Shown here one piece after another: positions 7,622 to 32,515 of a stretch of 64,000 nucleotides of DNA. Below the pieces are notes generated by a model. The model was not told the origin of the DNA and ran no database searches. It was given only the letters and a program-made list of their open reading frames with translations. Each line of letters starts with the position of its first letter. The first letter of the stretch is position 1. Where the stretch lies: the NCBI GenBank assembly GCA_946965045.2, contig OX337229.1, forward strand, positions 1,984,001 to 2,048,000, given 5' to 3'. Both the position numbers and the translations under genes were made by a program. This DNA comes from Epithemia pelagica. Lineage: Eukaryota; Protista; Bacillariophyta.

Positions 7622-8188
7622 TCAAATGCCGTACTTGATTTTCATGGTCAACAGACCTTGTTGACCCAGGAGGATTTCGTGAATAAAGGTGAAGATACCG
7701 AGCCAAAAAACTGGGGTAATATCAACGCCAAATGCAGGAGGGATGACACCTTTGACAGCTCGCAGCAACGGCTCAGTAAGAAAAGCCACCAAGGCCCAGG
7801 GCATGTCGGAAATTTTGGTTTCCGGATACCAACTCAGGACGACACGGGCCAACATGGCAAACGACAGGAAATTCAAAAATGGGTCCAAAAACGAGGCAGC
7901 GGGTTGCACCCATGCCTGTGTTTCCGACAATTGTAGAGAGGAGGAAAGAACGGCAGCCGAGGCTGTGACTGTGTCTGGGTCTACCGCGTATAGGGCGCTA
8001 CTCTGGGCCTTGTCGCCGTCGTCGTGACGGCCGCACGGTGGACCAAACTTGCGCGAGTATCTTGGACGACGACAGTCGCAATCAGTCGCTAGGGGCATAA
8101 AGCCTTGTGCCGCATGAAGCGTAGCAAATATAAGCAGGAGGAAGACCTCAATTCTGAACGAAGAAGAAAACAGACGATGCTGCGTCAT
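7622..8188 (-). CDS. YGGT/YlmG family plastid membrane protein with bipartite presequence
   Basis: Signal peptide ...HAAQG-FMP; LARVVLSWYP, LTEPLL, FGVDITPVFW. Confidence 0.85.
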   Translation of the reverse strand: MTQHRLFSSSFRIEVFLLLIFATLHAAQGFMPLATDCDCRRPRYSRKFGPPCGRHDDGDKAQSSALYAVDPDTVTASAAVLSSSLQLSETQAWVQPAASFLDPFLNFLSFAMLARVVLSWYPETKISDMPWALVAFLTEPLLRAVKGVIPPAFGVDITPVFWLGIFTFIHEILLGQQGLLTMKIKYGI

Positions 8189-8276
8189 GGTGAAAAATGA
8201 TTCGATGTGTGTATCGATGATGATGGATTGGATTTTCGATGATGTGGAGCGCATCTATTCCACTGACCACGCATGA

Positions 8277-11200
8277 TTGAAAATCCTCATCGCTCTCTCT
8301 GCGAAGACTCAACCCCAGCCCCCAAACGTTGTCCCGCCGCTCCCCATCATTTTGCCCCGTCCCCGATGCATGCTAATCTACACATCAAAATCACAATGCG
8401 CGATGGAGATGGAGATGGAGGGAGAAAATTTTACCGCCACTATCTTTCACGAATCCGCTCACTCGTTTTCCTTTTTGCCTTTGTTGGGCCTCAACTTTTC
8501 CAAAACGACTTCCTTCACCATAACAACCGATTCCAACCTTTTGCCTGCGGAGGTAGTTGGTGGCGGCGGCGACAACAACAACAACAACAGCAGCAGCAGT
8601 GGGCAAGAAGTGTCAACCACCGGCGAAGAAAATAACAGCCGCATCAACGAGAAGGACGAAAGCATTTGTGTTCCACAACAACAACAAGCATCACACTCCT
8701 TCGAGGACCAAAACAACCACGCGTCATTGCTGACCACAGCAACAACAACCACGTCACAAGAGTTATCGTCGGGAACGCAAGGCTCAGGGAGTAACAAGAC
8801 CGACGACCCAACAACGGACGAGTTGGCAACTGCATTGGAAAGTGTTGTGATAAGGGACGTCAAGAGTAATAGTACGACGGACGGACTTTCGAGTGATTTG
8901 GAAAACAACCAGGTCCAGACCGGGAAGGAAGATCTCGAACAAGAGAAGGACGTCTTGAGGTGGTCTCCATTGGATCCACAAGATTTGGAGGGGCCTGAGT
9001 CTTCCGAATATTTGTTTACGCAGGAGGAATTGGCCGAGGCACTTCGATTTCTTGGTGACGACGAAACCAAGGACGAGTCAGCGCCAGAAACTCAAAGGAA
9101 CGACGACGGGGACGGCAACAACAACGACCACATCGAGTCTTTGGGGCCCATTGAAACTTGGGAGGGAACGCGTATACCTTCCCCTACTCCCATTGCTGAA
9201 TCAGTCAACCCGAGTGAAGTCTTGGACGAAGCAGCCTTGTTGCAAAATCTTCTTCTTGGAGAAGACTTGAATTTTCGTTCTGTCAACGAAGAAGACGACG
9301 ACGAAGAAGAAGCGTTCTTGTTACCCACCTCGAAAGAAGAATTGGCTCAAATTTTTCTTGCGGAAGACCCGCAAGACTTGGCCAATACCAGTAGTGAAAC
9401 TGATCCGAACGAGACAAGTGCACCGAGCCTATCGTTTGAACAGGATTTTGTGGCACAAAGTATTCTGGAACAGTTACAAGGTCTCTCTTTGTCTGTACCA
9501 CCCGCCGAAGCCACACAGGAAGACGATTCGTCGTCCGATATTCCTCCCTTGCAAGAAATTGAACGAACTAGCCAGTCTGAAGCGATTGTAGCTAAAAATT
9601 CAACTCGATCCGCTTTTGGGCTACAATCCAATCCGAGACAGCAACTGGATCCAACTCTCCAGTTATTGGGTTCCCAACTGCCCTTTCTGCAGTGTGAACC
9701 TTGTCCTGTTTCCATTGAAGACGAAAAACAAGGACTGAACCTCGCCTTGCCACCCCCTGTGGAGCCAACAGACGACGAGGAGGACAGTGACAATAACCAA
9801 GACGGTTGGGGAGAAACTGCAGAAAAGGAAAGGGCATTGACAACATCCCAGAAGCCTGATCCAAGTTTTTTGTTGGGAGACGACGTTCTACCGTACTTAC
9901 AGTGCCAGCCGTGCGGTGATCCTACTGGCGAAGCTCCACCACCACCTCCATTTCCCAACAACCAATTCATCGAGGATACCTTAGATTTGGCGGAACTTGA
10001 TGCGATGATGGCAGAGTTCGGAATCACTACTGAGGTCCCTCCGCCAAATGATACAAGAATAATAAACTCCAACAATGATCATGAAGAGGAACCGGAAGCC
10101 GTATCGGACAACAGTTTCCCTCGTCCAGTGGCTTCACCATCCGTCCTTGCCGCTGCGAAACCATATTTGGATACATTTGGTGTCCAACCCACCGAGATAC
10201 AATCCCCAACGACATCGGAACCCGAACCACCAAAGCCTTCATCGAAAGTCTTCCACAACAAGGGTGAGCGAAGTTGTTTGGGACACCGCGAACGTATTCT
10301 TAGTGTGCGTTTTTCGGTTCATGGGACATTGATGGCAACTGCTTCCGCTGATTCAACTATACGGATATGGAGACCTACGACCAATACTTTGCTGAGCACC
10401 CTTTCACATCACGACCAAAACTATGAATGTTTGCGAGTTGCATGGGCGACCTCCGAATGGTTCAAGGATGCAGACTCGATGAAAGGAGATCAATACGAGG
10501 AAAACTCAGTAGACAAGGATGAGGAAGCTCTCCTGGCGACAGCCGGTGCTGATGGGCAAGTCTTTATATTGAAACGAAGAGCAAAGACGTCAACAAGTAG
10601 CAAACGGAAACAGTGGGACACCATGGCATGCATCAACCATGCCAAGGATATGCACCATTATACTCCCGCGGACGCCGAAGATCGACCACAGATTTATGCA
10701 TTACAATTTATTGACAACTTTCAAGTCAGTCCAAACATGGCATGCTCACATGTGAACAATAGAATTTTGTTGACTTCGTCCGAAAATCATTTGCATTTTT
10801 GGGAACTCATTCAAGAACCCAAACCTCAAGATAAGCTTGAAACAGTTATGGAAGAAAACGACGACGACGAAGATGATGACAAACAAGACTCTAAGGAAGA
10901 ACCGCCCGTTTATCCATGGCACTTTCGAGAAATGTTTAGCGTTGGTTTTGGTAATCTTCATACCATGGGAGGCGGCGTATCTGTGGGCCGTGTCACCGAT
11001 GATGCCAACCCGTATCTGCCCATCACGCAAGTCGCGGAAGGTGATACCAATGAGGCTTTTGGAGGAGAGCGGAACCCCAACGGACTTATCTACGTGTTTG
11101 ATGCAGCTTACTGTCCTGTCAACGGATTGATTGGTGTCGCTCTTTCTGATGGAAGTTTACGGTTGTTGAATGGTCGCGGTGTTTGTGTGTCTATTTTACA

Positions 11201-11765
11201 GCTACCAGGTGTATCGACCCATTTGACATCGTTTTGCTGGGATGCGAGTGGAACTCAGTTGGCTACAAGCGTGGCATCTACAGGTCATGTTGTAACATGG
11301 GAGATTATCATGAACAAGACAAGATCTGATGTTCAGCGGACATCTTGCCGTGCCGTACTGGGAGGAGGTCATGACCGCACCGTCTTTGGAATGCGATATT
11401 GTGGAAACCCCGATGAAGCGGGGACCGAACCATGGCTTGTATCTTGGGGCGCCGATGGTCGCCTTGCCTTATGGGAAGCTCTGGTAGATGGGGAAGTCGA
11501 TGCTCCCATTGCTACTTTGGTCAATCGCCCAGAATATCCCATCTTTGGACTCGATTTTGACGAGCGGACCCGACATATGGCCTTAGTCGGAGGTGACGGA
11601 GATGGAGGTTTTATCGGAATACCGGTAAAGCTCTTTGATGTCCACCCTGAAGCAAGAGAGAAAACGCCAAATGTTTTGGACGAATCCAAAGGGAAAAGCT
11701 ACACGCAAGATACTTCCAAGAAACCTAAACTGGTGGGCAGTAAAACTGGGAAGAACGTTTCATAG
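8277..11765 (+). CDS. WD40-repeat protein with long acidic disordered N-terminus; start uncertain
   Basis: 1162-aa ORF; GHRERILSVRFS...ATASADSTIRIW, LATAGADGQV, FCWDASGTQLATS, LVSWGADGRLALW. Confidence 0.75.
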   Translation: MKILIALSAKTQPQPPNVVPPLPIILPRPRCMLIYTSKSQCAMEMEMEGENFTATIFHESAHSFSFLPLLGLNFSKTTSFTITTDSNLLPAEVVGGGGDNNNNNSSSSGQEVSTTGEENNSRINEKDESICVPQQQQASHSFEDQNNHASLLTTATTTTSQELSSGTQGSGSNKTDDPTTDELATALESVVIRDVKSNSTTDGLSSDLENNQVQTGKEDLEQEKDVLRWSPLDPQDLEGPESSEYLFTQEELAEALRFLGDDETKDESAPETQRNDDGDGNNNDHIESLGPIETWEGTRIPSPTPIAESVNPSEVLDEAALLQNLLLGEDLNFRSVNEEDDDEEEAFLLPTSKEELAQIFLAEDPQDLANTSSETDPNETSAPSLSFEQDFVAQSILEQLQGLSLSVPPAEATQEDDSSSDIPPLQEIERTSQSEAIVAKNSTRSAFGLQSNPRQQLDPTLQLLGSQLPFLQCEPCPVSIEDEKQGLNLALPPPVEPTDDEEDSDNNQDGWGETAEKERALTTSQKPDPSFLLGDDVLPYLQCQPCGDPTGEAPPPPPFPNNQFIEDTLDLAELDAMMAEFGITTEVPPPNDTRIINSNNDHEEEPEAVSDNSFPRPVASPSVLAAAKPYLDTFGVQPTEIQSPTTSEPEPPKPSSKVFHNKGERSCLGHRERILSVRFSVHGTLMATASADSTIRIWRPTTNTLLSTLSHHDQNYECLRVAWATSEWFKDADSMKGDQYEENSVDKDEEALLATAGADGQVFILKRRAKTSTSSKRKQWDTMACINHAKDMHHYTPADAEDRPQIYALQFIDNFQVSPNMACSHVNNRILLTSSENHLHFWELIQEPKPQDKLETVMEENDDDEDDDKQDSKEEPPVYPWHFREMFSVGFGNLHTMGGGVSVGRVTDDANPYLPITQVAEGDTNEAFGGERNPNGLIYVFDAAYCPVNGLIGVALSDGSLRLLNGRGVCVSILQLPGVSTHLTSFCWDASGTQLATSVASTGHVVTWEIIMNKTRSDVQRTSCRAVLGGGHDRTVFGMRYCGNPDEAGTEPWLVSWGADGRLALWEALVDGEVDAPIATLVNRPEYPIFGLDFDERTRHMALVGGDGDGGFIGIPVKLFDVHPEAREKTPNVLDESKGKSYTQDTSKKPKLVGSKTGKNVS

Positions 11766-12215
11766 CATGGAGAGTCCACTATCACGTGTTTCACAACTCA
11801 CCTTAGGGGATAAGCTTTCCTGTGACAATCATCCCTGGTCGATATGCACCTTTTTGAAGGGGTAATGTTAATATAAGTTTTCAACTAAAGATAGATACTT
11901 CAAGGCGATTACCAGTCGAGCATAGCATAGGAGTACTCCTACTCTCTAGCTATGGCTGCGTGCCGTTGCACGAGAACGGACAACATACAGACTACAGACT
12001 GGGCTTGAGACTGAGACCCAAGCGCAACGTGTCAGTACGGGGGCCGGCCAGACGAGAAGCAGACTTGCGCTGTATTCTGTTGTGCCGACAATCGACAACC
12101 TCACACACTCGATCATAAAGACAGGGTATTCCATCAACGAGTGTGCCCAAGATATCATCGTTAAAAAGTCTTTTTGCTGTGTGGATCTCTTGAATTGAAT
12201 CAAATCCATTGAAAG

Positions 12216-13909
12216 ATGAGATTCCTTCATCTTATCCGCCCGGTGATGTGCATCCTCCCAGAGGTTGCTAGCCCTGACCGAAAGGTATGAAGAGGTGACC
12301 TGCGCGAAATCTCCAATGACTCTACGGCTATCGTATCATTTGTAGACAAGCTTCTTGATTTGTCACTTTTGGAACATTCTTGCATGAAGAGCTTTCTATT
12401 TTCCACAACTGGCTTACGTGATAAGAAGTTGAGGGTATCCACACACATTTCTAACTAGTGAATCCTTGTGTTTACCCCACTGCAGATCCCTTTGCGTGAA
12501 AAGCTTTTGTGGACAACTATCACTTTGTTCATCTACCTCGTATGTTGTCAAATTCCCATCTATGGTATTCAGAGCGCCAAATCTTCGGATCCCTTTTATT
12601 GGGTTCGTGTGGTTCTGGCTTCGAACCGTGGTACTATCATGGAGCTCGGAATTTCCCCCATTATTACATCAGGAATGGTTATGCAGATGCTCGCAGGAGC
12701 CCGTCTCATTGAAGGTGCGCTATTCAATAAGCCAATCATTTGGTCAGCTTGAAGAGTGATTTCAATCTCACTTATTGTTCTTATCTTGCAGTTGATCAGA
12801 ATGTGAAAGAAGACCGTGCTCTGTTCCAAGGTGCTCAGAAGCTGTTTGGTATTTTGATCACAATCGGTGAAGCCATTGCTTACGTTGTGTCTGGCATGTA
12901 TGGAGATTTGGGCTCTATTGGAGCTGGAAATGCCATTCTCATCATCACCCAGCTCTTCTGTGCGGGTCTTATTGTGTTGACATTGGATGAAATGCTTGCC
13001 AAGGGATATGGTCTTGGTGCCGGTATTTCCCTCTTCATTGCAACTGGTATTTGCGAAACTATTGTCTGGAAGTCGTTCTCACCCACCACTATCAACACTG
13101 GACGTGGTACCGAGTTCGAAGGAGCGGTCATTGCGCTCTTCCATTTGCTCATTACGCGCAACAACAAACTCCAAGCACTCCGTGAAGCCTTCACCCGTCA
13201 GAACTTGCCCAACCTGACCAATCTTTTGGCCACTGTTCTCATTTTCGTGGTTGTCATCTACTTCCAAGGATGGCGTGTGAACCTTCCTGTCAAATACCAG
13301 AAGTATCGAGGCCAAGAAGGAAACTACCCCATCAAGCTTTTCTACACCTCCAACATGCCCATTATTCTGCTCTCTTCCCTCGTTTCCAATCTCTACTTCA
13401 TTTCGCAACTACTGTACAACCGAGCTCCAACAAATGTTTTGGTGCGCTTGTTGGGTATGTGGCAGGAGCCCGAAGGAGGAGGCCAGAAAATTCCAGTCGG
13501 TGGTATCGCATACTACATTTCCCCTCCACGTTCTTTGGCGGAAATCATTTACGACCCATTCCATGCCGTATTTTATTTCGTTTTCATTTTGACATCCTGT
13601 GCCCTTTTCTCGAAGACATGGATTGAGGTTTCTGGTTCTTCGGCTCGGGATGTGGCTAAGCAATTGCGCGACCAGCAAATGGTTATGAAAGGTCATCGTG
13701 ACTCTGCTCTCATCAACGTTCTGAACCGCTACATTCCGACTGCAGCCGCCTTCGGAGGTATGTGCATTGGTGCACTCTCTATCCTGGCCGACTTGTCCGG
13801 GGCCATTGGAAGTGGAACTGGAATCCTTCTTGCAGTCACCATCATTTTCGGTTTCTACGAGTCTTTCGTGAAGGAACAGCGAGATGGTGTTGGAGCTTAT
13901 GGCTTCTAG
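12216..13909 (+). CDS. SEC61A: Sec61 translocon alpha subunit (introns 12285-12485, 12715-12791)
   Basis: [23 protein letters not shown]|[47 protein letters not shown]. Confidence 0.97.
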
Positions 13910-14575
13910 GCCGCTGTTCTTGGTTGGATATAAAATTCTACTCTTATCTATTGGTGTTTTGGTGTCTTGTTCATGGTGGAAAGATTCAAGGCAAGGAAAA
14001 GACACGGTCGCAATTGTTCTGTGAGAGCGTTGGAGGTGCATCCGCGGTCAGTTCCGTACGGGCTGGTTTTGTATCGTCGTAGTGTCGAATATAGGGCATT
14101 AACCGCGGCAAAACTTCTTGTCTTGGCGTCGAAAGACGCTGACAAGGAAATTGCGGGCACAACGCCGCCCCCGTCGTTTGGACTTTGTATTGAATTTTAC
14201 TAGCTATTGAAAGGACATGGAAATAACCAGTGATAGACCAAGAGTAAGGTGTTACGTTAAAAGGCTATGATTACTTTCGTCAAATGGTCAATATTCATTG
14301 TATTTATGTCAGAGTGAGCACATCCCACCTGTCATCAACATCCATCAATTGATCATGAGGACTCAGTTCATGAGAAATGAGTACAACAGTAGTTCTAACA
14401 GAGAGAGAGGGACATATATTCGTCATGTTTCCAATTTCTCCCACTTCGACAGACCTCTTAACGAGTTTCGCAAAGGAGGTAGTAGTGATGTCATATCCGT
14501 AGCCAAGAATGTTCAGTCTGACGTTTCTTATGCATGCTTTGTCTGGGCGAGTTCAAAACACCGGAGATGGAATCC

Positions 14576-15935
14576 TCACACGTACTTCTCGCGTACTTGT
14601 TGCAAAATATCTGCATTTGTCGGTGTTTGAATTCCAAATTCTTCCCCTTTCCTCACGACATATCCTGTTAGATGGTCGATTTCGGTCCGCTTGTTACTCA
14701 ACACATCCTGCAACATGGAAGATCGGTTGTTCTCAGTGTCAGCGATCACTTTTTTACAAAATTCAACCATTGCATCCGTAGACAACTCCTTGTTTTGCGT
14801 AGCTTGTTCCGCTGTGTACACGACCTTCTGGTCTTGTGAAAGGGATGACCGAAACCTGTGATCCTCTCGGGCCACTGCAGAGACTTCATCCAAAATTGAA
14901 CGTTGCAATGACGCAAAATCGGGAACTACGGAAATTAGCTCACCGTTTGTACATTGATAAAGTGCTGTAAGGGGATTGATGACACAGTTGGTGCCCAGTT
15001 TAAACCATAACAGCTTCTCCATTTGATCAGTCGAGACTGCAGGACGACATTCCAAACCAGAGGTATTCCATATCTCAGTCCAGTCAATGTTCTGGTCGTT
15101 CCCTAAAGTTAAAGGAAGCTGAATATGGCCAACACCACCTTGGATTATATGCTCGTGATCAAAATCATCGTCTTGGATGATGGACTTCTCCCGAATAACA
15201 CCATGAGTCGTATAGCCAAGGTGAATATTACAAGGTGTCAATCCATCCGACTTGGCCGCTAGGTCCAGCAGCTCATCTCTCACAGCTAGTGCACCATTAC
15301 AGAGCAACAATATGTTTGTTTTTACGCCAGACCCTTGAATGAACCGATTTTGAACGGACGAAATTGCTTCGATGGCGGAAAACGCCTTGGTTGTGACAAT
15401 AAGATTTCGAATGGAAGGATTACCTTTTATGGAGCATCTCTCAGAGGGAATAGGTATGGTTTGCATTCGGTGTTGTCCATCGATGGTGTGTTGAAAGCTT
15501 ACCATTGTCGTATCTGGATATGTCTGATGTTCGGAGCTGGAGTCATCATGGTCTCTGTCTCGACGCAAAGTACGTAAAGGAAAAGTAGGATACGCCAATC
15601 GAAGTTTGCACGCCAGGAATAAACCTTCAAGGGGATAGGCGATATAATTGCTCAGGGTGAGATCCTGGGGACTAGATTGATTATCATTGAGGCTGTAACA
15701 ATAAGGTGTACCATTACAAGAACTCACCGACAGCCCCAGATCCGAGAATATGAAGTTGATGCTCTCGTTTTGATAGAAACGGTTTCGTCTCTGGTTTTGG
15801 TCGCTCTTCCTTCGTCCCAGCAACTGTGATGCCGCTTCGACGAGATACGGCGCCGTTGCTTGATGTAACGATCGAGTCTGATAGTGAGGGAGATCTCGAG
15901 CGTGAATACTTGAGCGATTTGATCCAGAACGCCAT
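14576..15935 (-). CDS. panE: 2-dehydropantoate (ketopantoate) reductase (intron ~15727-15626)
   Basis: HILGSGAVG|LFLA Rossmann motif across the intron, TTKAF, LCNG, KLGTNCVINPLTA, SSMLQD...TEIDHLTG. Confidence 0.85.
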
Positions 15936-16321
15936 TGAATTGAAGGAGTGCTCCTACTCCTGTGAGTGAAGATGTGCCATTGTATGCCATAGCCGATCTA
16001 CCTACCGTAGCCGTTTTTGCCAACAATGTACTCCTCTAGTTACTCCTAGGAGTAGGAGATTAGAGTCATAGATAGATAAAGTAGGTCGACTATGTACTCT
16101 AACCTCTCGAAAGACTCCGCCGCCTTTCCAACTTAGATCCTTGTTGTTTCCCGCCATTCTGTATAAGAACTCCTACCTAGAAGCATACGATCATTCGCCT
16201 ATTAACGATAGAAAAACAACGATGTATTCTAAGATATAAGGGATTGTCAGAGTGGTTAACAGCAAACAGGAATCCAAACATAGACCAGGTTTCGTCATAA
16301 ATTGCAAACAACTCAGATTGA

Positions 16322-16914
16322 TTAAAACTCGTCTGTTGCCAAGTGTTCTGTTTCTTGAACTCGCTTCACAAAATCTTCCTTTTCGATGCACCCCATGCAC
16401 TCAATACCACGATCAGCCAAAATTTGTTTGAGTTGTTTCACTCTCAACTTTGAAATGTCCTGCTTCTCCATCTTCTCCGTTTTCACTGGGAATTTCACTG
16501 TGCAGATTTCAGGGTTACTCTTATTGATTCGTTGACATACTTTTAAGCTCGACATTCCGAGTGAGAACGGTTGAGCAACATCACGTTTAATCGGGTCCAG
16601 GTAGTAGCAGATTTTCCGCTCTCGTGCCGATAGCTTAGATGATTCATCTGCACAGTACTTGCCCAAAGCCGCCTCGATAGCTGGCTTTTTCCGGGATTCC
16701 TCTTTTGTCATGGACTCCTTTACATCATCCATTACTTTCACACACACTGTTCCAAAAAGAAAAACATGATCATTAGAATTCGCCCCAACGACGGTAACTC
16801 AACTCATGTCGTCGCAAGCTTTCAGGATCTGGCATACACACCTTCACATTCTGTTGACGCCAATGTGACAGAGGATCCAAGCAGGCACGCAAGTAACAAA
16901 ATGAAGGACTTCAT
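16322..16914 (-). CDS. MANF: MANF/ARMET-like ER protein (signal peptide, saposin-like + SAP-like domains; one intron)
   Basis: MKSFILLLACLLG signal peptide, CE|VC, KICYY, KVCQRI, ICTVK, KLRVKQLKQIL..RGIECMGCIEKEDFV, C-terminal TDEF. Confidence 0.85.
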
Positions 16915-17692
16915 GGTTGTTGCACTATGTTAATCAATAATATAGTGTAAATCCAGTCTTCGATTGTCGAAGTGGCCGTGAAGCAATGTTTGGTGTTTGA
17001 TGCCAACGGTTGACTGCCGACACGTACCTTACTTCAGACACCTCACCGTATATTAATCGTTTTCTTCATGGTGATGATTAGATCATATTTGTCTAAGATC
17101 GCTTAGGAGTGGTATATGACACGTGGCAAAATCGCAAGAGCTCCGGGTTGCCTGTACAAATTAGCTCATAGTGAAGTTGGTCGCTGTTTCTTTTGTTGTT
17201 GCTGTTAGGATCCCTGATAGTGATAGGGTTATCCGTAGAGAGATAGTTCTAGAGGAGTACTTTCGCTAGGGACTTTTGATGAGAATACTTGCGTTGACTT
17301 TGTCCTTCAATGAAGTTCCCACAGCCACAGTCCAAATGTAAATGGAATAGTTCTACTTGCTACATCGAGTGCAAACACAAAACTCTCTTTGATTCCACAG
17401 AAGTGTGACCTATTTACCTTGGTTGTAGAGGTTGAAACAATACACGACACTCTCAATCAATACACACAGAATGTAACCGAAAACTGTCTCATAAGCGTTT
17501 AGAGGTTCATGAGTTTAAAGTAGCGAATGGATGAATTTCGTTGTGGAAGCAGGGCTCCAACTGGATCTCATGTTCACACAAACGTTTGATGTTCGTTTGA
17601 TGTGCAGTACTGTACACCAATCGGGAGCCGACTGGATCTACGTACGTGACTTTCCACATGCAGCCACGGTCATGGTGCGTCTTTTACGGGAT

Positions 17693-19024
17693 TTAACTCC
17701 GCTGGTAGACATAGGCGCCACGAATTTTCCAGAAGGCCTCGGCCAGTGCGTCCGGGTTGGATTCAATGTATGCCGTGCATGTTTCCCATGGATCGGCTTT
17801 GTCTGTCAAGTTGAGCTTGGCAATTTCGGGACAATCTCGCAGGAATCGATTGCCGGCCACCGTTCCGCAAAAGGCCAAATTGATCACCAGACGCATATCC
17901 TGAAAGTGATCGGCCGAGCATCCAGTGTATTGTCCAATGGCAAAATGGGCATAGGGGAGTCCCCATTCGTCCGTATCGGGCATGATGCGTTCCGATGCAT
18001 GAGATGCCGATGCCGTGTCCACGGCTGCCTCCAAGTTTTCGGGAACACCCTCATTGCGCGGAAAGACCCACGATCGAATGCGTTTATTGGCAGGGTCCCA
18101 CTCTAACGCGTATAGTCCACCACCCGCTTTGTTGAGTGGTTCACCCAACGTATTGTTCCGTTGATCGACTGCCACGCACCCTTGATTGGCCCATTGGTGG
18201 GGCGCCATGGTCCAACAATTGTCGGCTTCCACGCGTGTAATGTAGTCGGGTTCTCCAGTCCACGTCTCTGGGATACCAGTGGCAGTGTCCCATTTACCAG
18301 TCCATGAATACGATGGGACATGCGCATACATGTCACATTTGTCGGATGTGTGCAAGGCAGTCTTGGCCATTGGTTGACGGTTGATCCCTTCGACAATATC
18401 AATTTCTCCATTCTTGGGCCAATGGGCTTCGTCGGTCAACCAAAAGGCTGGCCAAACACCACAACCGGCAGGCATGTGGTCGAGATCAAGAATAAACAAG
18501 CCATGCTGATAGCGGCGTCTCCCCTCCAGGCGGATTGATTCGCGAGGCTCTCCTTCTTGAGTTTTCATGGAATGCATAAAGACAAACTCCTTGCCAGTTA
18601 CAGGGTCTCGTGTCGTATTGGCAATACCAAGTTCGTGAGCACGCTTTTTGTTCACATAAATATTGTAGCCAGCAGATCCTAGAGAATCTGGACCCTCATA
18701 GAAATTATAAAAGTCAAAGAAGTGTTCTCCTTCTTGACGTTCCACGAGATGATAGGCTCCTGATGGAAAATTATCACTTTTGTGGTTCATGACGAGAGAC
18801 ACAATAACTGCAATAAAGACTGCCGAGGCAACCGTAACTGCCAACACCTTGATGCGAGAAGAACCTTGCTTGATCCAAGCGAACGCGTTCGAAACTTTGG
18901 TGAGCAAGGAAACATTTTCTTCGTAATCGTGAGGTGTCTTCTCGTTATCACCCAGGCTTGACGAGCTCTGCGGCAATAAGGACGTCGATTCTTTCGGAGC
19001 CATGACTCTTCTCTCTTGTAGCAA
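17693..19024 (-). CDS. Membrane-anchored GH16 beta-1,3-glucanase/transglycosylase (chrysolaminarin TGS-like)
   Basis: N-terminal TM helix; MPAGCGVWPAFW, WPKNGEIDIVEG (ExDxxE), INLAFCG. Confidence 0.88.
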   Translation of the reverse strand: MLQERRVMAPKESTSLLPQSSSSLGDNEKTPHDYEENVSLLTKVSNAFAWIKQGSSRIKVLAVTVASAVFIAVIVSLVMNHKSDNFPSGAYHLVERQEGEHFFDFYNFYEGPDSLGSAGYNIYVNKKRAHELGIANTTRDPVTGKEFVFMHSMKTQEGEPRESIRLEGRRRYQHGLFILDLDHMPAGCGVWPAFWLTDEAHWPKNGEIDIVEGINRQPMAKTALHTSDKCDMYAHVPSYSWTGKWDTATGIPETWTGEPDYITRVEADNCWTMAPHQWANQGCVAVDQRNNTLGEPLNKAGGGLYALEWDPANKRIRSWVFPRNEGVPENLEAAVDTASASHASERIMPDTDEWGLPYAHFAIGQYTGCSADHFQDMRLVINLAFCGTVAGNRFLRDCPEIAKLNLTDKADPWETCTAYIESNPDALAEAFWKIRGAYVYQRS

Positions 19025-19369
19025 CTAGAGATGTTCCCAAGATAGTGCTATGATAGGCAATCAACAATCAAAACGACGACTTTCCCACTTCTTTGTGATC
19101 TTTGACCACCCACGTCCACGTCGATTGTCGTCGTGGTCGTGGCCCGATTCGTTTTGTCATGTTGTGCGCCCCGTTGTGCGAGTGACGCGTTCTTAGTCGC
19201 GTTTGAATCAGACGCGTTTGGTTCGCTCATAGGCCGTAGGAAACAAATGAGAACAAAATCCTTCCAAAAAAGATACACCCTTCCAAAACAAAGAGGTGCC
19301 GGCAGAAGAGAGAAAGAGAGAAGCACATCAACAATTCGCATATCTGACAACATCTCTTTATCATCAATC

Positions 19370-20682
19370 ATGACGAGCGAATCCACGCAAATTGTCACTG
19401 GCCAAACCATAGTGTCGGACCATGTTGCTGCTGCAGCCGCTACCGTGAACAGCAGCAGTGGTGGCCGCCTCGGTCTCAAGGTGCTGTTGGCGGTCGGGAC
19501 GCTCCAATGGGGCACAACGTGGGTCGACGACAAGATTATTAACCGGACGGGATGCATTACCGAACAAGAATGCAAGGAAATCCTGGATGCAGTCCAAAAC
19601 TCGGGCGTGACCCTGATTGACACGGCCGAAGGATATGGCGGAGGGACAGCCGAAAAGCGACTCGGCCGATTGTTGGGGAACCGTCCGTCGACACTTGCTA
19701 CTGTTTCGAGCAGTAAGAAGGATACAAGCAAGGAACCCAAGTTTGTCCTCATGACCAAATTCCTTCCTGTACCATGGCGTGCGTTTCATTCCGATTTTGA
19801 ATGGGCCGTAAGACAGTCTTGTGATCGATTGCAAGTCCAGTGCATTGATATTTACTTGTTGCATTCTCCGGTCCACTGGCGTCCTATTGAGTGAGTTCTT
19901 TGATTGAGTTTTCTCGTGGTTAATCGCTGGCCAGTTTTTGCCAAGAGAAGAAGTTGAATGCATAGCATGACATACTGACTTGTCTTTGTGTTCGGTTCAT
20001 CTTCTTCTCCAGATACTGGGTAGAATCAGCAGCAATATGTAAACGAAAAGGTCTGATCAAGGCAATGGGTTTATCGAATGCTAACGCGGATCAAGTGCGT
20101 CGAGCAGTTGCAACAGGGAAACTGCATGGGGTAGAGATTGTGTGCAATCAAGTACACTATAGCTTGCTGGATTACAATTCCAAAGCCTTACAGGAAATGG
20201 AATCCACATGTCGTGAGCTCAATGTGGTGATTATTGGATTCTCGCCCATGGGACAGGGCTTGTTGACGGACAACTTGACGGCAGAGAAGTGGAAGTCCAA
20301 CAAATTGCCCAAAATGCTTCGATTGCAACGATCTGATATTGAACCTCTTCGCAGTGCCTTACAGGAATTGTCCAAATCCTATGACAAAACAATGGCTCAA
20401 GTTGCCATGAATTGGTGTATTCAGTATGACATTGTCCCTTTGGTAGGATGCCGAACATTGTCACAGGCTAAAGATTCTCTGGGATGTTTGGGATGGACGC
20501 TCAAGCCAGCCGACGTCAAACGTTTGGACCAATTGGCGCTGGATCGATCCGCTTTGCAAAGTCCTCCATGGAGGAGAGCCATATTTGTCACTCTCTTTGG
20601 AATTGTCAATCTCGTATGTCAAACCCTGAATTACTTTGGCTATGGCAGTATTCTCGGCACAAAGGACAAGAAACAGGAGTAG
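19370..20682 (+). CDS. Aldo-keto reductase (pyridoxal-reductase-like; intron 19891-20012)
   Basis: VGTLQWG, IDTAEGYG, TKF, IDIYLLHSP, GLSN, NQVHYSLL, FSPMGQGLLT, QVAMNW. Confidence 0.9.
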
Positions 20683-20867
20683 CAGACAGCAACATGTCAT
20701 TCATACGACGACTACAACGAAAGACACAAGAGAACGGACTGGTGTATTCCTTGACCTGCTGTTGATCTAGTTCAGAAACAATTGGGCATGCAAGATTGAT
20801 CTTTCATGACTATGGTGTTAACGATGAATGTAGAAGGGTACAGTACCACTCCAGATGTACGTTATTG

Positions 20868-21775
20868 TCAGAGAGGATACTGTTTGTAAAGCCAAGCCCA
20901 GAGCGTCGGGGTCAACAGTCCATGGCACCACATGCAGAGCTCTCGGAATCTCTCCGGATCAAGCACAGTTGCCAAAGTTCGTCTGCCAGTAACAAGATCT
21001 CCTTCATAGTCCCTCAGATCCTGCATGGAACAAAGAGTCCCGTGGGAGAAGGCAAATGGCACCACTAGTTTCCACCAACCATCGTCAAGACAGTATCCTG
21101 CAACTGAAGCTCCACTTGACATCATAGCCAGTACCCCAACAGAAATGAAGACATGATTCTTGTACCAATGGCTGTGGTCCAACCCGATCAAGTAACCTCC
21201 CGCACCCACAACGACCCAAAGGAGGGACAACCAGCCAACGTTGAAGGCAAACCCAAAAGCTACATAGGCAATCTGGGCAAGAATGGATCTTACAATCATG
21301 CCCCGTTTTGATACCAAGCCTGCAGCATAGGGACGGTGGGGCTTATCAACCTTGTCCTGTTCCACTCCCACCAAATTGTTCACTGTATCAAAAGAAGCAA
21401 TGTAGAGAATGCCCAATGTCATCGCAGATAAGGCCTTACCCCAGTCCCAGGCTCCAACGTTGACTGATCCTGCGAGAAAGGAAAGGAAAAATAGACCAAT
21501 TCCGGAAAACGCATTGTCTCTAATCATTTGGAACCAGATGTTAGTTTCAGCTTTGACAAAGTTCAAAAGCTGCGGGGATTTGGGGACTTCCTGGAAGCTG
21601 CTGCCTACCACGGCTCTCTCAGCGTTTGATATGACCTCCGTGCACTCCGAGTTCAGGGAGGAGCCCAAGTCCAGACGACGAACTGACGGAGTCGAAAGGT
21701 GCGCGAAACGCCAGCAATTTGGAATCCAAAGGCGCTCTGCCAGCCCATAACGAAGACAATAAAATGAAGCAGCAT
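20868..21775 (-). pseudogene. UbiA-superfamily protein with terpene-cyclase-type motifs; N-terminal signal peptide out of frame and C-terminus possibly truncated
   Basis: NNLVGVEQDKVDKPHRP and QDLRDYEGD..GRRT with multiple TM helices. The only nearby ATG (21775, MLLHFIVFVMGWQSAFGF) is in a different frame from the UbiA body. Confidence 0.7.
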
Positions 21776-21856
21776 GTTCAGTTCAGCTGAGACTTTGTGC
21801 AAGATTATGAGCTCCTCCAGTCCCTTCAAGAAATGCTCCGTATCCGCTCTACTCGT

Positions 21857-22715
21857 CATCTTGGTGCTTCAGTTCCGACGAGGCTTGAATAACCCCAGCA
21901 CAGCAGAGCCAATAATCGCTCTTCGACATCTTGGTGCTTCAGTGCACTGAAGGCGTGAATAATCTTAGCCCAGTAGAGACAGCAATCGCTCTTCGACGTC
22001 TCGGTGCGTCACCACTGCCAACGAGGCTTGAATAACCCCAGCACAGCAGAGCCAGCAATCGTTCTTCGGCGTCTTGGTGCTTCAGTGCCAACAAGTCGTG
22101 AATAATCCTCAAACAGTAGACACAGCAATCGCTCAGTGCGTCAACGCCGAGAAGTTGTGACTATCCAAAGCACAGAAGACACAGCAATCGCTCTTCGACA
22201 TCTCGGTGCGTCACCACTGCCAACGAGGCTTGAATAACCCCAGCACAGCAGAGCCAGCAATCGTTCTTCGGCGTCTTGGTGCTTCAGTGCACTGAAGGCG
22301 TGAATAATCCTAGCACAGTAGAGACAGCAATCGCTCTTCGACATCTTGGTGCGTCACCACTGCCAACGAGGCTTGAATAACCCCAGCACAGCAGAGCCAG
22401 CAATCGTTCTTCGGCGTCTTGGTGCTTCAGTGCCAACAAGTCGTGAATAATCCTCGAACAGTAGACACAGCAATCGCTCTTCGACATCTCGGTGCGTCAC
22501 CAATGCTGATGAGGCGTGAATAACCCCATCACAGTAGACACAGCAATCGCTCTTCGGTATCTCGGATCTCGATGCGTCAACGCCGAGAAGTCGTGACTAA
22601 CCAAAGCACTGTAGACTGTAGACACACCAATCGCTCTTCAACATCTGGTGCTTGTACCGGAAAGCCAATAACACCAGCACAGCAGAGCCAGCAATCGTTC
22701 TTCGACATCTTGTTG
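21857..22715. repeat. Minisatellite, ~12 units of 70/73 bp forming a 143-bp higher-order dimer
   Basis: Anchor (C/T)AATCG recurs at ~21913, 21983, 22056, 22126, 22185, 22258, 22328, 22401, 22471, 22544, 22628, 22692. Confidence 0.92.
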
Positions 22716-25700
22716 CTTGTTGATTTGCCATTATTTCCCCTCCAAATAGGTGTGGCGGCCAGACGAAAATTGGTCGCGTGTCCTGGACACGTGCTTGGGA
22801 GAGCTTGCTCTCAAATAGGGTGGCTTTGCCAGCCCTCCAACTGCCAGGAAGCGGCCCTGCGTGGATGACGGTTGAATTGTTTCATAATATGCCGGACAAG
22901 CACACAACGCTTTTCTCTTGCCAAACGAATGGCATTCCAGGTGAGTTTGATCCGTTGCCGATTGCCATGACAATTACATTGCTCATGCTCACTGATCACT
23001 GACACTTGTCACTTTTGTTTGCTCTGCTCATGGGAAGAGAGGCCATTATCTGTTGAGTCTCTGGGCAGCTCATTACGTGCCATTGTACATGTCGAAATGA
23101 CGGATTTTTGATAACTTTCATTGCATTCATAAACAGACTACAGACAATCTTTTCTTTCTATACTAGGAGTAGGAATAGAACTCAAGTGCTAGTGACTCTT
23201 AGAGATCAGTGCATTCTGAATTCGTTGCAGATCTCTTTTCTGTTTTGAGCGTGGCAATGACCCTCAAATTCACCATGAACACACAACATAGTAGCAGCTC
23301 TCACACGCTTTTACAGCTACAACTTTTGACTCTAGGATCTGGTAGACATGGAAAGTAGGGTGTGGCATGAGCAAGAGGGCTTCCCATCTTTTTGAAGCAA
23401 AACCAACAAAGTGTTCGGTCCTTGAGAAATGAGATGATGTAATGACCTATGACGATAGTGAATCATCTATCCTACAGAAGATATGAAAGCAACCAACCAA
23501 CAATCCAACAACAAAACAATTACTCCTACAACAACAAGTGAAAAGGGTAAGATACTCCAGTTGACATCAAGCGGCTTGTTCATAGTCTACTCGTTCAACA
23601 TGAGACAAAGCCAGAGGATCATGCATGAACAAGAGGAAAGATTGCAGCAGTGATGAATGAGAAGAAAACACAGGAAACAACATGATTAGAAATGAGCTAC
23701 AGTAGTGAGAAGTTAGAAGCAATTCAGCCCAGCATGATCCGTCCATTGTTCGTACCTCACGTCATGGTCAAGCATTTGCTCGGTTTTGGGTTTTGTGACA
23801 GACGAGAACGAGAAGGTTGCCCAAATTTATCAAAAAAGAAACCAAATCCGAGGAAACTGGACGCAAGCCGACCTTGATGTAACGGTGTTGGCAATTAGAG
23901 ATACTTAGAGCTACCTGGAGCAGTGGCGGGCGATATTGAAAAAGGATAGGGTTGGGGATTTGTCTGGCCGCCTCACCTATTTGGAGGGGAAAAAATGGCG
24001 AATGCCGACAAGCGACAAGACGTGAATAACCCCAGACCCCAGTCCAGCTCGTTCAACAAGTAGAATATTGAGCATTCAGCATTCAGCATCTGTTGCCTTG
24101 CATTTTGTTCGTGGGGAGCTCGGTTCTCGATCATTGTACGATTTACAGTCTACAGTGCCGAGTAGTTTCTTGATTGGGGAAAGAAAGTGGAATCTGATTC
24201 CTTATGGGTGACTACAGCAATCCGTTAAATCACTTCAGTCTGAAACTCTGAAGCGAAGATCACACGTGGACATTGTTGTCGGCTTTTAAAAAAAGAATAA
24301 AGAATGTCTTCATGCTTCATTCGGAAGATGAAGCTAAAACCCTCCGACTAGGTAGATGTCCGCTTCTTAGCTCGTCTGTTGTTCGGGCAAGACAAACCCA
24401 ATCTCACAGACAAAAAAATGAATGGAAATTTCACATCCATCGGTGGAAAGGCTGGCGTGATGTGACAGTTGGAAGATGGCAGGCGTTCTGCTCAACAAGA
24501 CTCAAAATAGTGTTCTCGGTGAGTTCACAGGCCACAAAATCGATGCAGGCAACAAAACGAGGCAATGACCAAACAGCGGCCTCATGCTTCGTCCCTGGGC
24601 ATCTCATCTCATCTTTGTCACTGCACATCCATCATGGTAAGTTCTGGAATGACTAATGTAACATCCATTTTGGTCGATGTCATGGGGGGCTGCTGGCATC
24701 ATTTGTAGGATTCTTATAGGACAAAATAGAGCTATAGACCTCAATTAGGAGTAGGTAGGATAAGTGGAGGAAGCCATCCATCTTTCCTCTGTCGCTCAGT
24801 TTGGGTCTTTAGTGGATTGTGATGTCGACCTGCTCCTGTTGTTCTTTTTTTGTTGTCATGAGCATGACTTGTCTTTCCCAGCAGTGCAGGAAACTCTACA
24901 CTCTACATGCTCCATAATGCAAGTAGAAAGAGACGTATTCTAAAATAGGACTGTAAGTGGTTGCAAAGAGACAAGCCTACGGCAACGGCACGGTGTTGTG
25001 GAGGAGGGTTCACTTTTAAACAAACACTAGAAACAACCACACTTCTCCGAGAAAAAACAAAGAAAGGATGGGGGTAGAGCAAAACACTATCTATGGTCTA
25101 TATGTCAAATGTCCATGGTGTGCAGATGATGGAGGATGGAGAATGCATTGAGATGGTGCATGTCCATTGTCCATGTCAAAAGGTGCATGGTGAAAATAAT
25201 GTGGGTCGCAACTCGCAACTTGGGACGACAATCAAGAATGTGGAAGACCAACGGTCAAAGTGCGCACGCCTGCTCACAAAATTTCAAAAGGGTGATGCAG
25301 AAGGCCGGCGTGATCATTTTCATTTTGACCAGGAATTTTCTTCTAAAACGCAAAAAAACCAAAATTAAAATGGTTGGTCGCGGAGAGCGGCTGGGGGGCT
25401 AAGAAGTCGGAGGGAATATTATGTTGTATCATGCGCGTACCTACTACCTACGTCTACCGTCTACCGTCTACCTCTACCTAGACTGTAGAGAACTCTACAG
25501 GTACTACTCCTACTAGCTCCTCTAGCTAGGAACAACTCCTTCTGTTCTGGGGGAGTCGTGTTCGTAGTTCGTAGTTCGTAGGTCTACCGTTCCCATACTA
25601 CGAGTAGAGGTCGGTCCTGCGGCAAGCGGTCACGCCTCACTAGCGCTGGATCTCCAGCGCTGGAGAATCTCCAGCAGATACACGCTGAATATTGGTGCTA

Positions 25701-26017: not shown

Positions 26018-27547
26018 TCACACTTTTCGAAGCAAAGCGGTTACGCCATTCTTCAGCAAGACAACGGCGGAGACACTTCCAATAATGGCGGAAAGGCGTA
26101 TTGCCCATGTACTAAAAGCGGAATTCGATGCTGCACTTTCGTCAAGGGAAAATTCATTGGGATCTTGCCACAGAACACCTGGACCACCGACCAGGGATCG
26201 AATGATTGTAAATCCCAATGGCTTGAGATCCGCTTCAATTTGTTTCAACACATTGCCGTCCTTCTTGCTCGACTCTTTGTCGTTGGGGATATCCGTCTCG
26301 AAGGACGGATGTAGGAGCACCAAGGCACACCCTCCTCCTCCAGCACCCGTCAATTTGGCAGCCGCAACAGATGCATATTTGGTTCGAATCAATTGGTCAA
26401 TCTCATCGAGTCGAGGATGAGAGACACTTAAGGCCCGCAGACAATCTTGATTCAATCGCACCAATTCCAAAAAGGCCGTCCCAGTACTCTCGGACGATGA
26501 CGACGCCAAACTGGTGAGCAAGTCTCGAACTTCAGTCACCAGAGCACCCATGGCATCGAGCAAAGGTTCCATGACAGACGTATGACGATTGTAGAGTGTC
26601 CGTACACCGGCAACCAAGGCTTTGGTGGAACGAGGAACGTGAGTATGAACTAAAAGCAATTGCAGTGTTGGAAAGGATGACAAACTTGTCATGTTGCTGT
26701 CCGAGACTTGTTTTCGCTCCTGTTCCGTGAGATCTTTAGCAGAATTGTTGGTGATCTTTGTCTTTGAATGTATATCTTTGGTGTACCACAAGGCTCCTCC
26801 ATGTGTTGACACCGCATTGTCGAGACCCGACGGTGTTCCATGCAACAAGATTTCTGACGCATAGGCGAACTTGTTGATTTCCTGGAGATCGGAAGCAGCT
26901 GGTTGGGTAGTTTTGGAGGACTCTGTGTTCTCGGTATTCAGGGAACGTTGTTTCCATCGAATCAGAGTTGCTACGAGGGCGACACTAAAGGCAGCCGATG
27001 ATCCGAGGCCAGCACCAACCGGTAAATCTTTCGATCGAACCCATAGTTTCAAGTCAATTGGCATTCGTGGTGTCCCTGGTTCATCCACTGTTTTCCAGTA
27101 CCACGCTGGAGCTAGCTGGACCAGCAAAAACAACACAGGTACTATAGGAAGCAAGGACAGATCCAACGGGGACGACATAACTTCCATTTCTCCGCTTCTA
27201 AGCGCTTTTTGCATGAAAGATTCGATTTGAGTGACCATGTCAGGAGAGGGAGGCATAGGCAATTGTTGCAAAAGCGATGAAGAAATACAGGTCTTGGTGA
27301 TTTTAACAAAAAGGCCCAAGTCAGCCATTATGATATGAATCGTTTGTGATTCATTGGTGATTGAAGAGTCGGCATAAGGCGTCAGGAGAACCGAAATACG
27401 TAGATCTGATAGGGCTGCCGCAATGGCAGGTTTTCCATACACAACTGAATGTTCTCCAAACAAAATCACTTTTCCAGGGGCCGACGCTGCCACTGAGAAC
27501 TCATTTACCTCCACTGGTGGTGTACTTTTGAAAAACGAGTTCGCCAT
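26018..27547 (-). CDS. MVK: Mevalonate kinase (GHMP kinase) with hydrophobic C-terminal tail
   Basis: SAPGKVILFGEHSVVYG, LPVGAGLGSSAA, HGTPSGLDN, KLTGAGGGGC. Confidence 0.95.
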   Translation of the reverse strand: MANSFFKSTPPVEVNEFSVAASAPGKVILFGEHSVVYGKPAIAAALSDLRISVLLTPYADSSITNESQTIHIIMADLGLFVKITKTCISSSLLQQLPMPPSPDMVTQIESFMQKALRSGEMEVMSSPLDLSLLPIVPVLFLLVQLAPAWYWKTVDEPGTPRMPIDLKLWVRSKDLPVGAGLGSSAAFSVALVATLIRWKQRSLNTENTESSKTTQPAASDLQEINKFAYASEILLHGTPSGLDNAVSTHGGALWYTKDIHSKTKITNNSAKDLTEQERKQVSDSNMTSLSSFPTLQLLLVHTHVPRSTKALVAGVRTLYNRHTSVMEPLLDAMGALVTEVRDLLTSLASSSSESTGTAFLELVRLNQDCLRALSVSHPRLDEIDQLIRTKYASVAAAKLTGAGGGGCALVLLHPSFETDIPNDKESSKKDGNVLKQIEADLKPLGFTIIRSLVGGPGVLWQDPNEFSLDESAASNSAFSTWAIRLSAIIGSVSAVVLLKNGVTALLRKV

Positions 27548-29882: not shown

Positions 29883-32515
29883 CGGACTCTATACACCCTT
29901 TTTGACTGAATTCAGTCTGGATTTGAAACCTCATCACTCCACGAATATTACGAATCAAGAGAAATGGTTGATTCCATCGTGTAGACCTCGAAAAGAGCTT
30001 TCTAAGTAGTAATAATGTTATACACAAATTCCTGTAACAAAAAAAGATACGAGCTTCTGGAATGGGTAGTCGATGGGGGTGATTTTTCCGGCTGATTTCA
30101 GCTCGGCGTTGAAAGATTGTTTTCTCTTGATGAAAGATGACACCCAAAACATTCACTGCATCTATACACTCCTGGAGTGCATGAGCAGTAGGTACGCACC
30201 CTCTTGTCGCAGCCAGAGCATTTGTGTTGTGGATAATCTGATGCTGCTTTCACAATTCTCACCCCAGAAAATTTTTTTCCCTTCGGCAACGTGGTGAGAG
30301 TGTGGCCTTGTTCTCGTGATCTTCTCCTCTTCAAATCAGGTGTCATGTCCTCCTCTTCTTGAAAATAATCATTGAAGATGAGTTGCCCTGCAAGCTGCTT
30401 CCTGAATTCAATCTGTCCAAGTTTTTCATGGTCAGAAAAGTACTGGAGGCCCAGGTTTACGTTCACTTCTGTCACGGCCAAAAGGAATGCAAACACACGG
30501 TTTGGCCACCACTTTGTTCCCCATGTTTCTTCTATGCTGATAGGGGAGTGTCTCTTATTGTTGTGGTCATCTACTGAGTGTCTGTAGAGGAAGTGGTTTC
30601 CAACAACTTCCGGATACTGAAAAGACTTTTGCTGCTTAGTACCACTCTCAACCCAGTCTCGACGAGTTGTCTTCCCTGTCCGCTGATTAGTGCCATATGT
30701 AGACATTAATGACATCACATAATCAGGTTCCTTCATAGAATACACATGGAAATCAACTTCATCCATGCATCCTTTCCAAGCATCACAATCTCCAACAGAC
30801 TTGTCGTTGAAATGGTCCTTGATGTCGTCTCCACGAATGAATTTTGGCCAGTAGCGACGCTTCTTGATAAGGGCTGATGCAAAAACACCCCTTTTCTTCA
30901 GCTCAACAATCCCTTTGAGAACACAAAAGCCACTGTCCAGAATTACAACACAGGCATAGCCAAAAATTGGAGCAAGTATTCGCAACAATAAGCCAACGGT
31001 ATTGCCCAGATTTTGGTGCAGAGGTTGTGGCCGTTGTCGTGGTGCATCCTTCCCTTTGACCAATTCTAATCCCCACAGAATACCAGAGAGAGAACAACAC
31101 ACTGTGTGATATTCATTTCCAAATGGATGTGGCTTCCGTGGGACAAACATCCATCCCGGACATGTGTACTTGTTTGTCCACACTGACATCGATTCATCAA
31201 GACAATTTACCCAGCTTGGAGTAAATTGTTGCTCCATGTTTTTATTCCACATTTCAAGCATTTGCCGAACCTCCCAGAAGCGGTCACTATAGGGGGGTGG
31301 TGCATTGTTTGTGTAGTAGATGGCGCGCAATATTGCATCAAATCGCTTTCTGGACATGATGTCGTTCAAACGCCATGGAGCACCCTTGAATCTATTGATC
31401 TCCCCCAATGACCAGAATGAGTTACGATCAGGGCCATGGATTGTTGACATGAGAAGCCAAACACCTATCCATCGCAAGAACTCTCCGTACAACATGCTCC
31501 TCTGACCCAGATTTGCAAGACGCTTGTTGGTCTCAACAATTATGACTTCCTTGACGAAGGATGTAAAAAAACATTTCCCACACGACAAATAATGTTGGAG
31601 TTGCAGAACTGGGAAAATTGAGTCGAGCTGGGAGCTTTCTTCCTCCCTCCATGGAGCGGTAGCAGCTACCTGAATGCTCCCAAGCTGAGAAGATGCCATC
31701 CGTGTTCTCGTTCGGAAGTGGAACATTTTCAGGTGCCGGTTGATTGTCGTCGTCAATCATATCAGGCACCATATTCCATACAACAGCTGTATCATCAACA
31801 GAAAGATTTCTTCCACCAGAGGCATCAATGAGATCCTGAATCTCATTGGGAATTTCGTGGCCATTGTCTTCCCTTTCGCCATTCGATTGACCGGTGTTGC
31901 TCGTCTGCTGCTGTGTGGTGGCGGCTGTGTTTGCAGTACTTGAAGAGGTGGCCGTGCTACCACTTTGATGTATTCCTGCTTCTTGTTCATTAGCAAAAAC
32001 ACCTTCTGGATTGCCTTCTTCTGTCACATGAACAAAGCGATGGATCGCCCAACATTCAAACGGTTCGGCAAAATCACCGCGTGCTGGGTGCTGGAACACA
32101 ACAACTCTCTTCTCTTCTCTACGGATTTTCCTCACTGCCTCTTCCACCACAATCAACCCACTTGCCCTGTCATCTTTTGTGGAATTAGGATAGGCCTTGG
32201 CAATTTGATCCTTTGGATGCAGCCTTGAAACAAGGACAGCTCCTTTTGCACCACTGCCGAGACGAAGTCTCATTTTTCTGTGTTTGGGCGCACAATACAC
32301 ACACCAAAAATTTTGGAGCAACCAATGTGGATCGAATGCTCAACAACCAACGATCAAACAACTTTCTCCTTTTGCACTAGTCCTCTCAAGTAAGTAAACA
32401 ACAAGTATCTAAAATGCCATTGCCATTGAGTTTGATTGTCGTGCTCTAACAACTTTCTACGATTGACTGAATTCAGCCCATGCGGCTGAATTCAGCCAGG
32501 GGTGGAGAATATCCG
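29883..32515 (-). mobile_element. piggyBac-superfamily-like DNA transposon, 2633 bp, AAAG target-site duplication
   Basis: TSD AAAG at 29879-29882 and 32516-32519 (empty site visible at 35909-35912). Imperfect termini CGGA-N7-CACCC. Subterminal G(A/G)CTGAATTCAG(T/C)C palindromes. Confidence 0.88.
30098..32273 (-). pseudogene. piggyBac-like DDD transposase (DDE_Tnp_1_7) with one frameshift in a 7-nt homopolymer at 31565-31571
   Basis: CLDESM, VILDSGF, SVDDHN catalytic triad; C-terminal Cys-rich CSGC..CSC..CSEC. Removing one T joins the two ORFs into ~724 aa (EMFF-TSFVKEV). Confidence 0.88.

Follow-up and report, generated by a model that had tools for sequence, protein, structure and literature searches.

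Does a UbiA-like open reading frame (ORF) in the genome of the diatom Epithemia pelagica belong to a terpene synthase gene, and is the copy that was sequenced still a working one? Fungi and bacteria are known sources of UbiA-type terpene synthases. The characterised fungal, bacterial and red-algal enzymes are membrane proteins with the UbiA fold, which ionise and cyclise FPP or GGPP with no need of an aromatic acceptor. Fma-TC is a beta-trans-bergamotene synthase, EriG is a cyathadiene synthase, and Tps1A and Tps2A are alpha-bisabolene synthases. We analyzed a stretch of 64,000 nucleotides (hereafter, the window), in which the original prediction had placed a UbiA protein with both signature motifs of such cyclases. 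Judged from its sequence, the locus holds a nuclear gene that belongs to the UbiA-type terpene synthase (UTS/UTC) family and has a putative cyclase function, and the copy in the window is most likely a null allele of this gene.

The UbiA-like ORF, its relatives and its neighbourhood

The ORF and its two motifs are as follows.

20868..21668, minus strand: UbiA-type terpene-synthase-like ORF of 266 codons from a TTG; stop at 20868-20870; encodes the transmembrane helices TM1-TM7 only
21354..21380, minus strand: motif I, NNLVGVEQD (N97, G101, D105), residues 97-105, followed by KVDKPHRP
20997..21023, minus strand: motif II, QDLRDYEGD (Q216, D217, D220, D224), residues 216-224, followed by LVTGRRT

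[quoted passage not shown] Motif I of the ORF reads N97-x3-G101-x3-D105, and all four residues Q216, D217, D220 and D224 are kept in motif II; both motifs therefore have the UTS form. The motif pair claimed in the original prediction is thus present. The ORF matched the Pfam UbiA profile (PF01040) with 67.5 bits and an E of 1.4e-18 (cutoff 34.2). An exhaustive HMMER search of 1.84 billion cluster representatives (E <= 1e-3) gave 423 relatives, and the best non-self match by phmmer was P0002, a protein of 328 aa with 32% identity and an E of 2.9e-32.

The patterns NQxxG(V/I)EED(R/K)xNKPxRP and QDxRDxxGDxxxGRxT were common to 150 of the 150 matches listed (of the 423). When 135 full-length family members were aligned, D105, R112, D220 and G223 were invariant, and D224, R229, K109, Q98, E104 and D217 were conserved at 98-99%; the motif II residues Q216, D217 and D224 were conserved at 91-99%. 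The ORF retains every family-invariant residue within the part that it covers. It differs from the family in motif I at Q98N (Q in 133 of the 135 members) and E104Q (E in 132 of the 135), and further at N108D, P233A and G237D. In Tps1A, activity was lost in the alanine mutants of D100, D215, D218, D222 and Y155 (PMC9835599). Y159 of the ORF, a possible counterpart of Y155 of Tps1A (the equivalent of AfUbiA Y139), lies 54 residues past D105, and Y155 of Tps1A lies 55 residues past D100; Y159 is invariant in the protist clade described below and stands in a family column that is mostly N. The language-model look-alikes of the ORF protein were Basidiomycota UbiA clusters. According to the HEx paper, UbiA-type cyclases form a class found generally in ascomycetes and basidiomycetes.

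Close homologs were sought in several ways. Identity to the query was at most 37% among the matches listed from 15 billion proteins, and the highest value, 37%, belongs to P0003, a fragment of 184 aa that was omitted from the trees. A word-index search with the ORF returned no protein besides the ORF's own. Scanning of the JGI metagenome contigs with a clade profile gave 46 loci, none of which exceeded 36% identity over the enzyme core, and no close ortholog was among them.

A maximum-likelihood (ML) tree of 67 rows was calculated with IQ-TREE (LG+C20 PMSF), leaving out near-identical cluster members and fragments below 200 aa. The outgroups were three canonical UbiA sequences; EriG, Fma-TC and Tps1A are not among the rows. 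The query falls in a clade of seven rows (UFBoot 98 / SH-aLRT 93), whose other rows are from Symbiodinium necroappetens/microadriaticum, S. natans, an Effrenium voratum transcript and two environmental proteins. The environmental proteins of this clade are encoded on eukaryotic-looking contigs of low coding density and 42-45% GC, and their genes are single-exon. The next relatives beyond the clade are unlabelled, and one of them lies on a contig of 57% GC with closely spaced called genes. With dinoflagellate and eukaryote-like sequences as the nearest kin, the tree gives no polarity for the horizontal acquisition that the original prediction considered possible. The long terminal branch of the query (1.9) was considered as a sign of decay and dropped, since the root-to-tip distances within the clade are 1.10-1.73 and the excess is mild.

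The basal branch of the family in the ML tree is an ascomycete clade. One of its members is P0206, named fumagillin beta-trans-bergamotene synthase in NCBI and UniRef by annotation transfer. A profile search with the fungal members yielded only a Colletotrichum protein named after Fma-TC, and none of EriG, Fma-TC and Tps1A. In this Fma-TC-named clade (P0172-P0179, P0206), motif I is two residues longer, NQKxPESIxED, as against N-x3-G-x3-D elsewhere. Thus, the published motif does not cover all members of the family.

Four neighbouring features bear on the setting of the ORF.

19133..20682, plus strand: aldo-keto reductase gene, the convergent neighbour; GT..AG intron at 19891-20012 (122 nt), confirmed by a spliced RNA contig
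21853..22556, no strand: tandem repeat array adjoining the ORF on its upstream side; periods of about 70, 143 and 202 nt, nested within one another
26018-27547, minus strand: mevalonate kinase gene (eukaryotic-type GHMP kinase, 509 aa), 4.3 kb upstream of the UbiA-like ORF
about 30100-31260: DDE_Tnp_1_7 (piggyBac-type) transposase gene, about 9 kb from the UbiA-like locus

Since the flanking genes are eukaryotic, the reductase intron is confirmed by RNA and the contig is 1.24 Mb long, the ORF belongs to a nuclear gene and not to contamination. The mevalonate kinase gene was considered as a cluster partner and rejected, being a gene of primary metabolism that is separated from the ORF by repeats. 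With an IPP-isomerase fusion at 46665-48475, three isoprenoid-related genes are found within 28 kb, which may be chance.

For analysis of the locus in other data, contigs from four public runs of this organism (X1-X4) were compared with positions 19000-23500. X3 derives from the same sample as X1, and X4 is an RNA run, as its contig splices out the reductase intron. At 22624-23500, the word depth rises from about 150 to 2,000-22,000 in the DNA runs, and a very high-copy repeat thus lies between the UbiA-like gene and the mevalonate kinase gene. The copy number of the tandem array varies between contigs, with a joint that goes back 356 in X1 and X2, and a 114-nt two-allele bubble was observed at 21766-21879. 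The reductase alleles also differ, including one non-synonymous change at 20425 (Tyr to His). The reductase has a hydrophobic, TM-like C-terminal tail, AIFVTLFGIVNLVCQTLNYFGYGSIL, an unusual feature in a soluble family.

The 3′ end of the ORF and the allelic breakpoint

The original prediction had hinted that the ORF would need repair, and this is borne out at both ends. At the 5′ side, the stop-to-stop frame opens near 21770 and stays open for about 300 codons. It contains no in-frame ATG before residue 48. A conserved N-terminal Glu, E41 (87%), lies upstream of Met48, and translation may start at Met48. As for a 5′ intron that would bring in an ATG, the frame would stay open with 107 GT..AG combinations, of which not one is compelling.

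At the 3′ side, the Pfam UbiA match ends at profile position 205 of 250, and P0002 was aligned to the ORF over its residues 15-240 of 328. The relatives possess about 70 further residues past the end of the ORF, comprising TM8-TM9 and the conserved R, DH and TY. The clade C-terminal block YRLA...HRLTY is absent from the ORF, as are the family-conserved C-terminal R (86%), D (84%) and Y (92%). No C-terminal remnant was detected in the 64-kb window by tblastn with 184 relatives. Weak matches at 12.9-13.5 kb were examined as the lost C-terminus and ruled out, because they fall in a hydrophobic Sec61-alpha/SecY gene (12466-13909, plus strand, two exons), the source of spurious tblastn matches from hydrophobic UbiA queries. 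Between the stop of the ORF and the convergent stop of the reductase there are 186 nt, and no part of them has a hydrophobic frame. As to the proposal of a candidate UbiA-type terpene cyclase, its motif pair and family placement hold; the window copy itself is truncated after TM7 and looks null.

The contigs of the four runs place the following features at and near this end.

20886..20890, no strand: structural-polymorphism breakpoint with the 5-nt overlap GTAAA; every contig listed from X1-X4 ends or diverges here
20868..20885, minus strand: post-breakpoint tail, KQYPL plus stop; no counterpart in relatives
21458..21465, no strand: 8-nt deletion in one X3 contig only; predicted frameshift at about codon 70

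The breakpoint lies at codon 260-261 of the ORF and coincides with the end of the family homology (residue ~260). X1 and X2 each have a contig with its end at 20890 and a following one with its start at 20886. A 704-nt contig of X3 agrees with the window as far as 20890 and then carries 117 unlike letters. In X4, a 398-nt contig spans 20886-21127 and carries 156 unlike letters; its depth is 5.6, as compared with 45.6 for the reductase. The X4 reductase transcript continues 44 nt beyond 20890 into unlike sequence. Both loose ends are absent from the whole window. These contig breaks and unlike loose ends indicate that a second allele exists in the organism, in which extra DNA, flanked by GTAAA, stands between 20890 and 20886. 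In X1, the depth of the bin 20812-20962 is 212 against about 150, which by arithmetic corresponds to an approximately 1:1 heterozygous bubble. A 30-mer of the other allele had no match in the JGI metagenome contigs. Exact look-ups of the mevalonate kinase, GH16, ARMET-like and SecY proteins, made for a sister haplotype, returned the window's own 1.24-Mb contig only.

The start of the extra DNA can be read in frame. Thirty of the 156 unlike letters, read after Y260, give GPLFATQPLT, which is open for 10 codons. Its Gly-Pro lies nine residues past the proline of TM7. Three of four clade members have Ala-Pro there, with the same nine-residue spacing in P0018 and P0005 and a spacing of ten in P0151.

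We consider it fairly likely that the locus is a UTS-family gene whose window allele is a null allele with a 3′ deletion, and whose other allele reads on in frame. A microhomology-type deletion with its edge at 20886-20890 would have taken the last ~70 codons, namely TM8-TM9 with the conserved R, DH and TY. In their place, six foreign codons with a stop would now follow codon 260, and the KQYPL tail is probably the antisense of the neighbour's 3′ UTR joined on in this way. The other allele would continue in frame at the breakpoint and would be the one seen at low depth in the RNA run. The inactivation would be recent, as the frame remains open over about 300 codons with its invariant residues retained. 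If the sample has two haplotypes and the 8-nt lesion lies on the non-window allele, as one unphased contig suggests, both copies would be null. The UTS gene as a whole may be decaying.

By analogy with the family, N97 and D105 of an intact member would hold Mg2+ and the diphosphate together with D217, D220 and D224, and the diphosphate would have K109, R112 and R229 as further ligands. The carbocation would take its shape from the helix bundle, and the substrate would be ionised and cyclised in the membrane cavity, as in Fma-TC, EriG and Tps1A. A protein that lacks TM8-TM9 and their conserved residues would presumably have no closed cavity and would be inactive.

Several observations count against the deletion. 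The contigs do not show the strand, and the X4 contig could be a read-through of the reductase. Among the contigs listed from X1-X4, none bridges the window's own junction. Furthermore, the 5-nt GTAAA overlap also fits a target-site duplication produced by an insertion in the other allele. In that case, a mobile element or other DNA would have entered the other allele, and the window would carry the native seven-helix gene, either as an old relic or in a shortened form. The overlap at 20886-20890 has the form expected of a 5-bp target-site duplication, the window is transposon-rich with the DDE_Tnp_1_7 gene nearby, and RNA contigs can read into an insert. We nevertheless regard an insertion as unlikely. 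It would have landed by coincidence exactly at the end of the family homology, six codons before a stop. The two visible ends of the extra segment possess neither a terminal inverted repeat nor TG..CA, and its visible 10 codons are open and carry the small-residue-Pro motif of the clade at the right spacing. In addition, the conservation of R, D and Y in TM8-TM9 (given above) argues that a native seven-helix form would not work. Thus, a 3′ deletion in the window allele is our preferred reading of the breakpoint.

Prenyltransferases and other forms of the protein

The AF2 model of the ORF protein has a pLDDT of 88.4 and seven transmembrane helices, as against nine. Its top matches by Foldseek were AfUbiA (4TQ3/4TQ4; TMq 0.62-0.66) and DGGGPS (6M31). 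The model accordingly has the UbiA helical-bundle fold, whereas the complete nine-helix architecture was not found in it. In comparison with canonical UbiA prenyltransferases (DGGGPS 6M31, AfUbiA 4TQ3, ChlG, UbiA/COQ2, MenA, HPT), the ORF protein shares the fold (TM-score 0.58-0.66), the placement of the two Asp-rich loops and PF01040.

The likeness does not extend to motif I, to the family scores or to the tree. N and G replace two of the Asp residues of the canonical NDxxDxxxD. The NCBIfam models of DGGGPS, ChlG/BchG, HPT, MenA and EboC gave 14-38 bits against cutoffs of 212-494; the best scores, with the cutoffs in brackets, were 38.5 (269), 27.8 (212), 22.6 (226) and 20 (264) bits. Thus, neither the family score nor the motif of a canonical prenyltransferase was found. 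Nesting within a known prenyltransferase clade had been set beforehand as the outcome that would speak against the original prediction. It was not seen: the NCBIfam scores lie far below the cutoffs, and the family of the ORF is split 100/100 from the three canonical UbiA outgroups in the ML tree.

These results bear on the possibility that the intact protein is an acceptor-dependent prenyltransferase of a divergent lipid or quinone type, with no cyclase activity. Public sources label clade members "Digeranylgeranylglyceryl phosphate synthase" (DGGGP synthase) or 4-hydroxybenzoate polyprenyltransferase, and archaeal-type prenyltransferases come first among the NCBIfam and PDB sequence matches. 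The protist clade has no assayed member, and the Laurencia UTSs keep NxxxDxxxD, so the motif is not related one-to-one to activity. The source labels are automatic, however, and on the protist clade they are probably mis-annotations. All NCBIfam equivalog scores are 7- to 30-fold under their cutoffs, only one of the three canonical Asp residues is left in motif I, the Fma-TC-named clade belongs to the family, and the motif pair fits cyclases that have been tested by mutation. We therefore consider a prenyltransferase of this type improbable.

A functional window allele, made either by splicing, with an ATG supplied by an upstream exon and the 3′ end by a distant one, or as an active short form from Met48, would agree with the long open frame, with the retention of all invariant catalytic residues, with ATGs at 21859, 21775 and 21748 that many GT..AG pairs can join to the frame, and with one Symbiodinium gene model that likewise begins past the N-terminal helix, but it is highly improbable, because the C-terminal homology is nowhere in the 64-kb window, the 186 nt to the convergent stop have no hydrophobic frame, the close relatives are single-exon, no candidate donor looks strong, and the single RNA run leaves the first two thirds of the ORF (from the 5′ end) uncovered.

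Comparison with known terpene synthases

With the window allele read as a deleted null allele, the locus itself matters less than the family to which it belongs, since it most likely represents gene decay and not a working pathway. The UTS signature in a diatom-like nuclear genome, in a clade with coral-symbiont dinoflagellates, points to a wider range of the family among marine protists. No mention of a UbiA-type terpene synthase from diatoms was found in the literature searched. What is new is the UTS/UTC family in a lineage that has no described member in that literature; the extension to red algae is already in a preprint of October 2026 (bioRxiv 10.64898/2026.10.28.762581). It is conceivable, though doubtful, that diatoms and Symbiodiniaceae share a distinct protist UTS clade, and that the other allele or other strains still encode a full-length enzyme for a cyclic sesqui- or diterpene. 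If this is true, the clade would represent a non-canonical terpene route in diatoms. The intact relatives (the Symbiodinium and Effrenium proteins and P0002), at least one of which is transcribed, are candidates for expression in a search for new terpene scaffolds.

Fungal Fma-TC, EriG and Tps1A/Tps2A: The ORF protein shares with these cyclases the UbiA fold, motif I of the form N-x3-G-x3-D, motif II of the form QD-x2-D-x3-D, and the KPxRP and GRxT boxes. It also falls in the same HMMER-defined family and ML clade as the Fma-TC-named ascomycete group. In contrast to the fungal cyclases, it lies in a separate protist clade at no more than 37% identity, carries Q98N and E104Q, and lacks TM8-TM9 in the window allele. 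Moreover, it is not in a biosynthetic cluster with P450s.

Laurencia UTSs: The red-algal LsUTS-2 and LpUTS-2 are bisabolene synthases (bioRxiv 10.64898/2026.10.28.762581). Like the ORF, they are encoded by algal nuclear genes of the UbiA family, and the LsUTS-2 model matches the same structures, 6M31 and 4TQ4. For these genes, the authors propose that they arose outside the host lineage. Unlike the ORF with its G-containing motif I, the Laurencia UTSs, by description, keep NxxxDxxxD and DxxxD, and their genes adjoin IDS/VHPO genes (bioRxiv 10.64898/2026.10.28.762581).

Symbiodiniaceae and environmental proteins: The nearest kin of the ORF are P0004/P0154, P0018/P0296 and P0156 (Effrenium), together with P0002/P0151 and P0005, with 28-33% identity over most of the ORF. 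They possess the same motifs, and the blocks FDxxNQxxGVEED, GY and HRLTY characterise the clade. Unlike the window copy, these proteins are full length (285-353 aa), with TM8-TM9 and a starting ATG.
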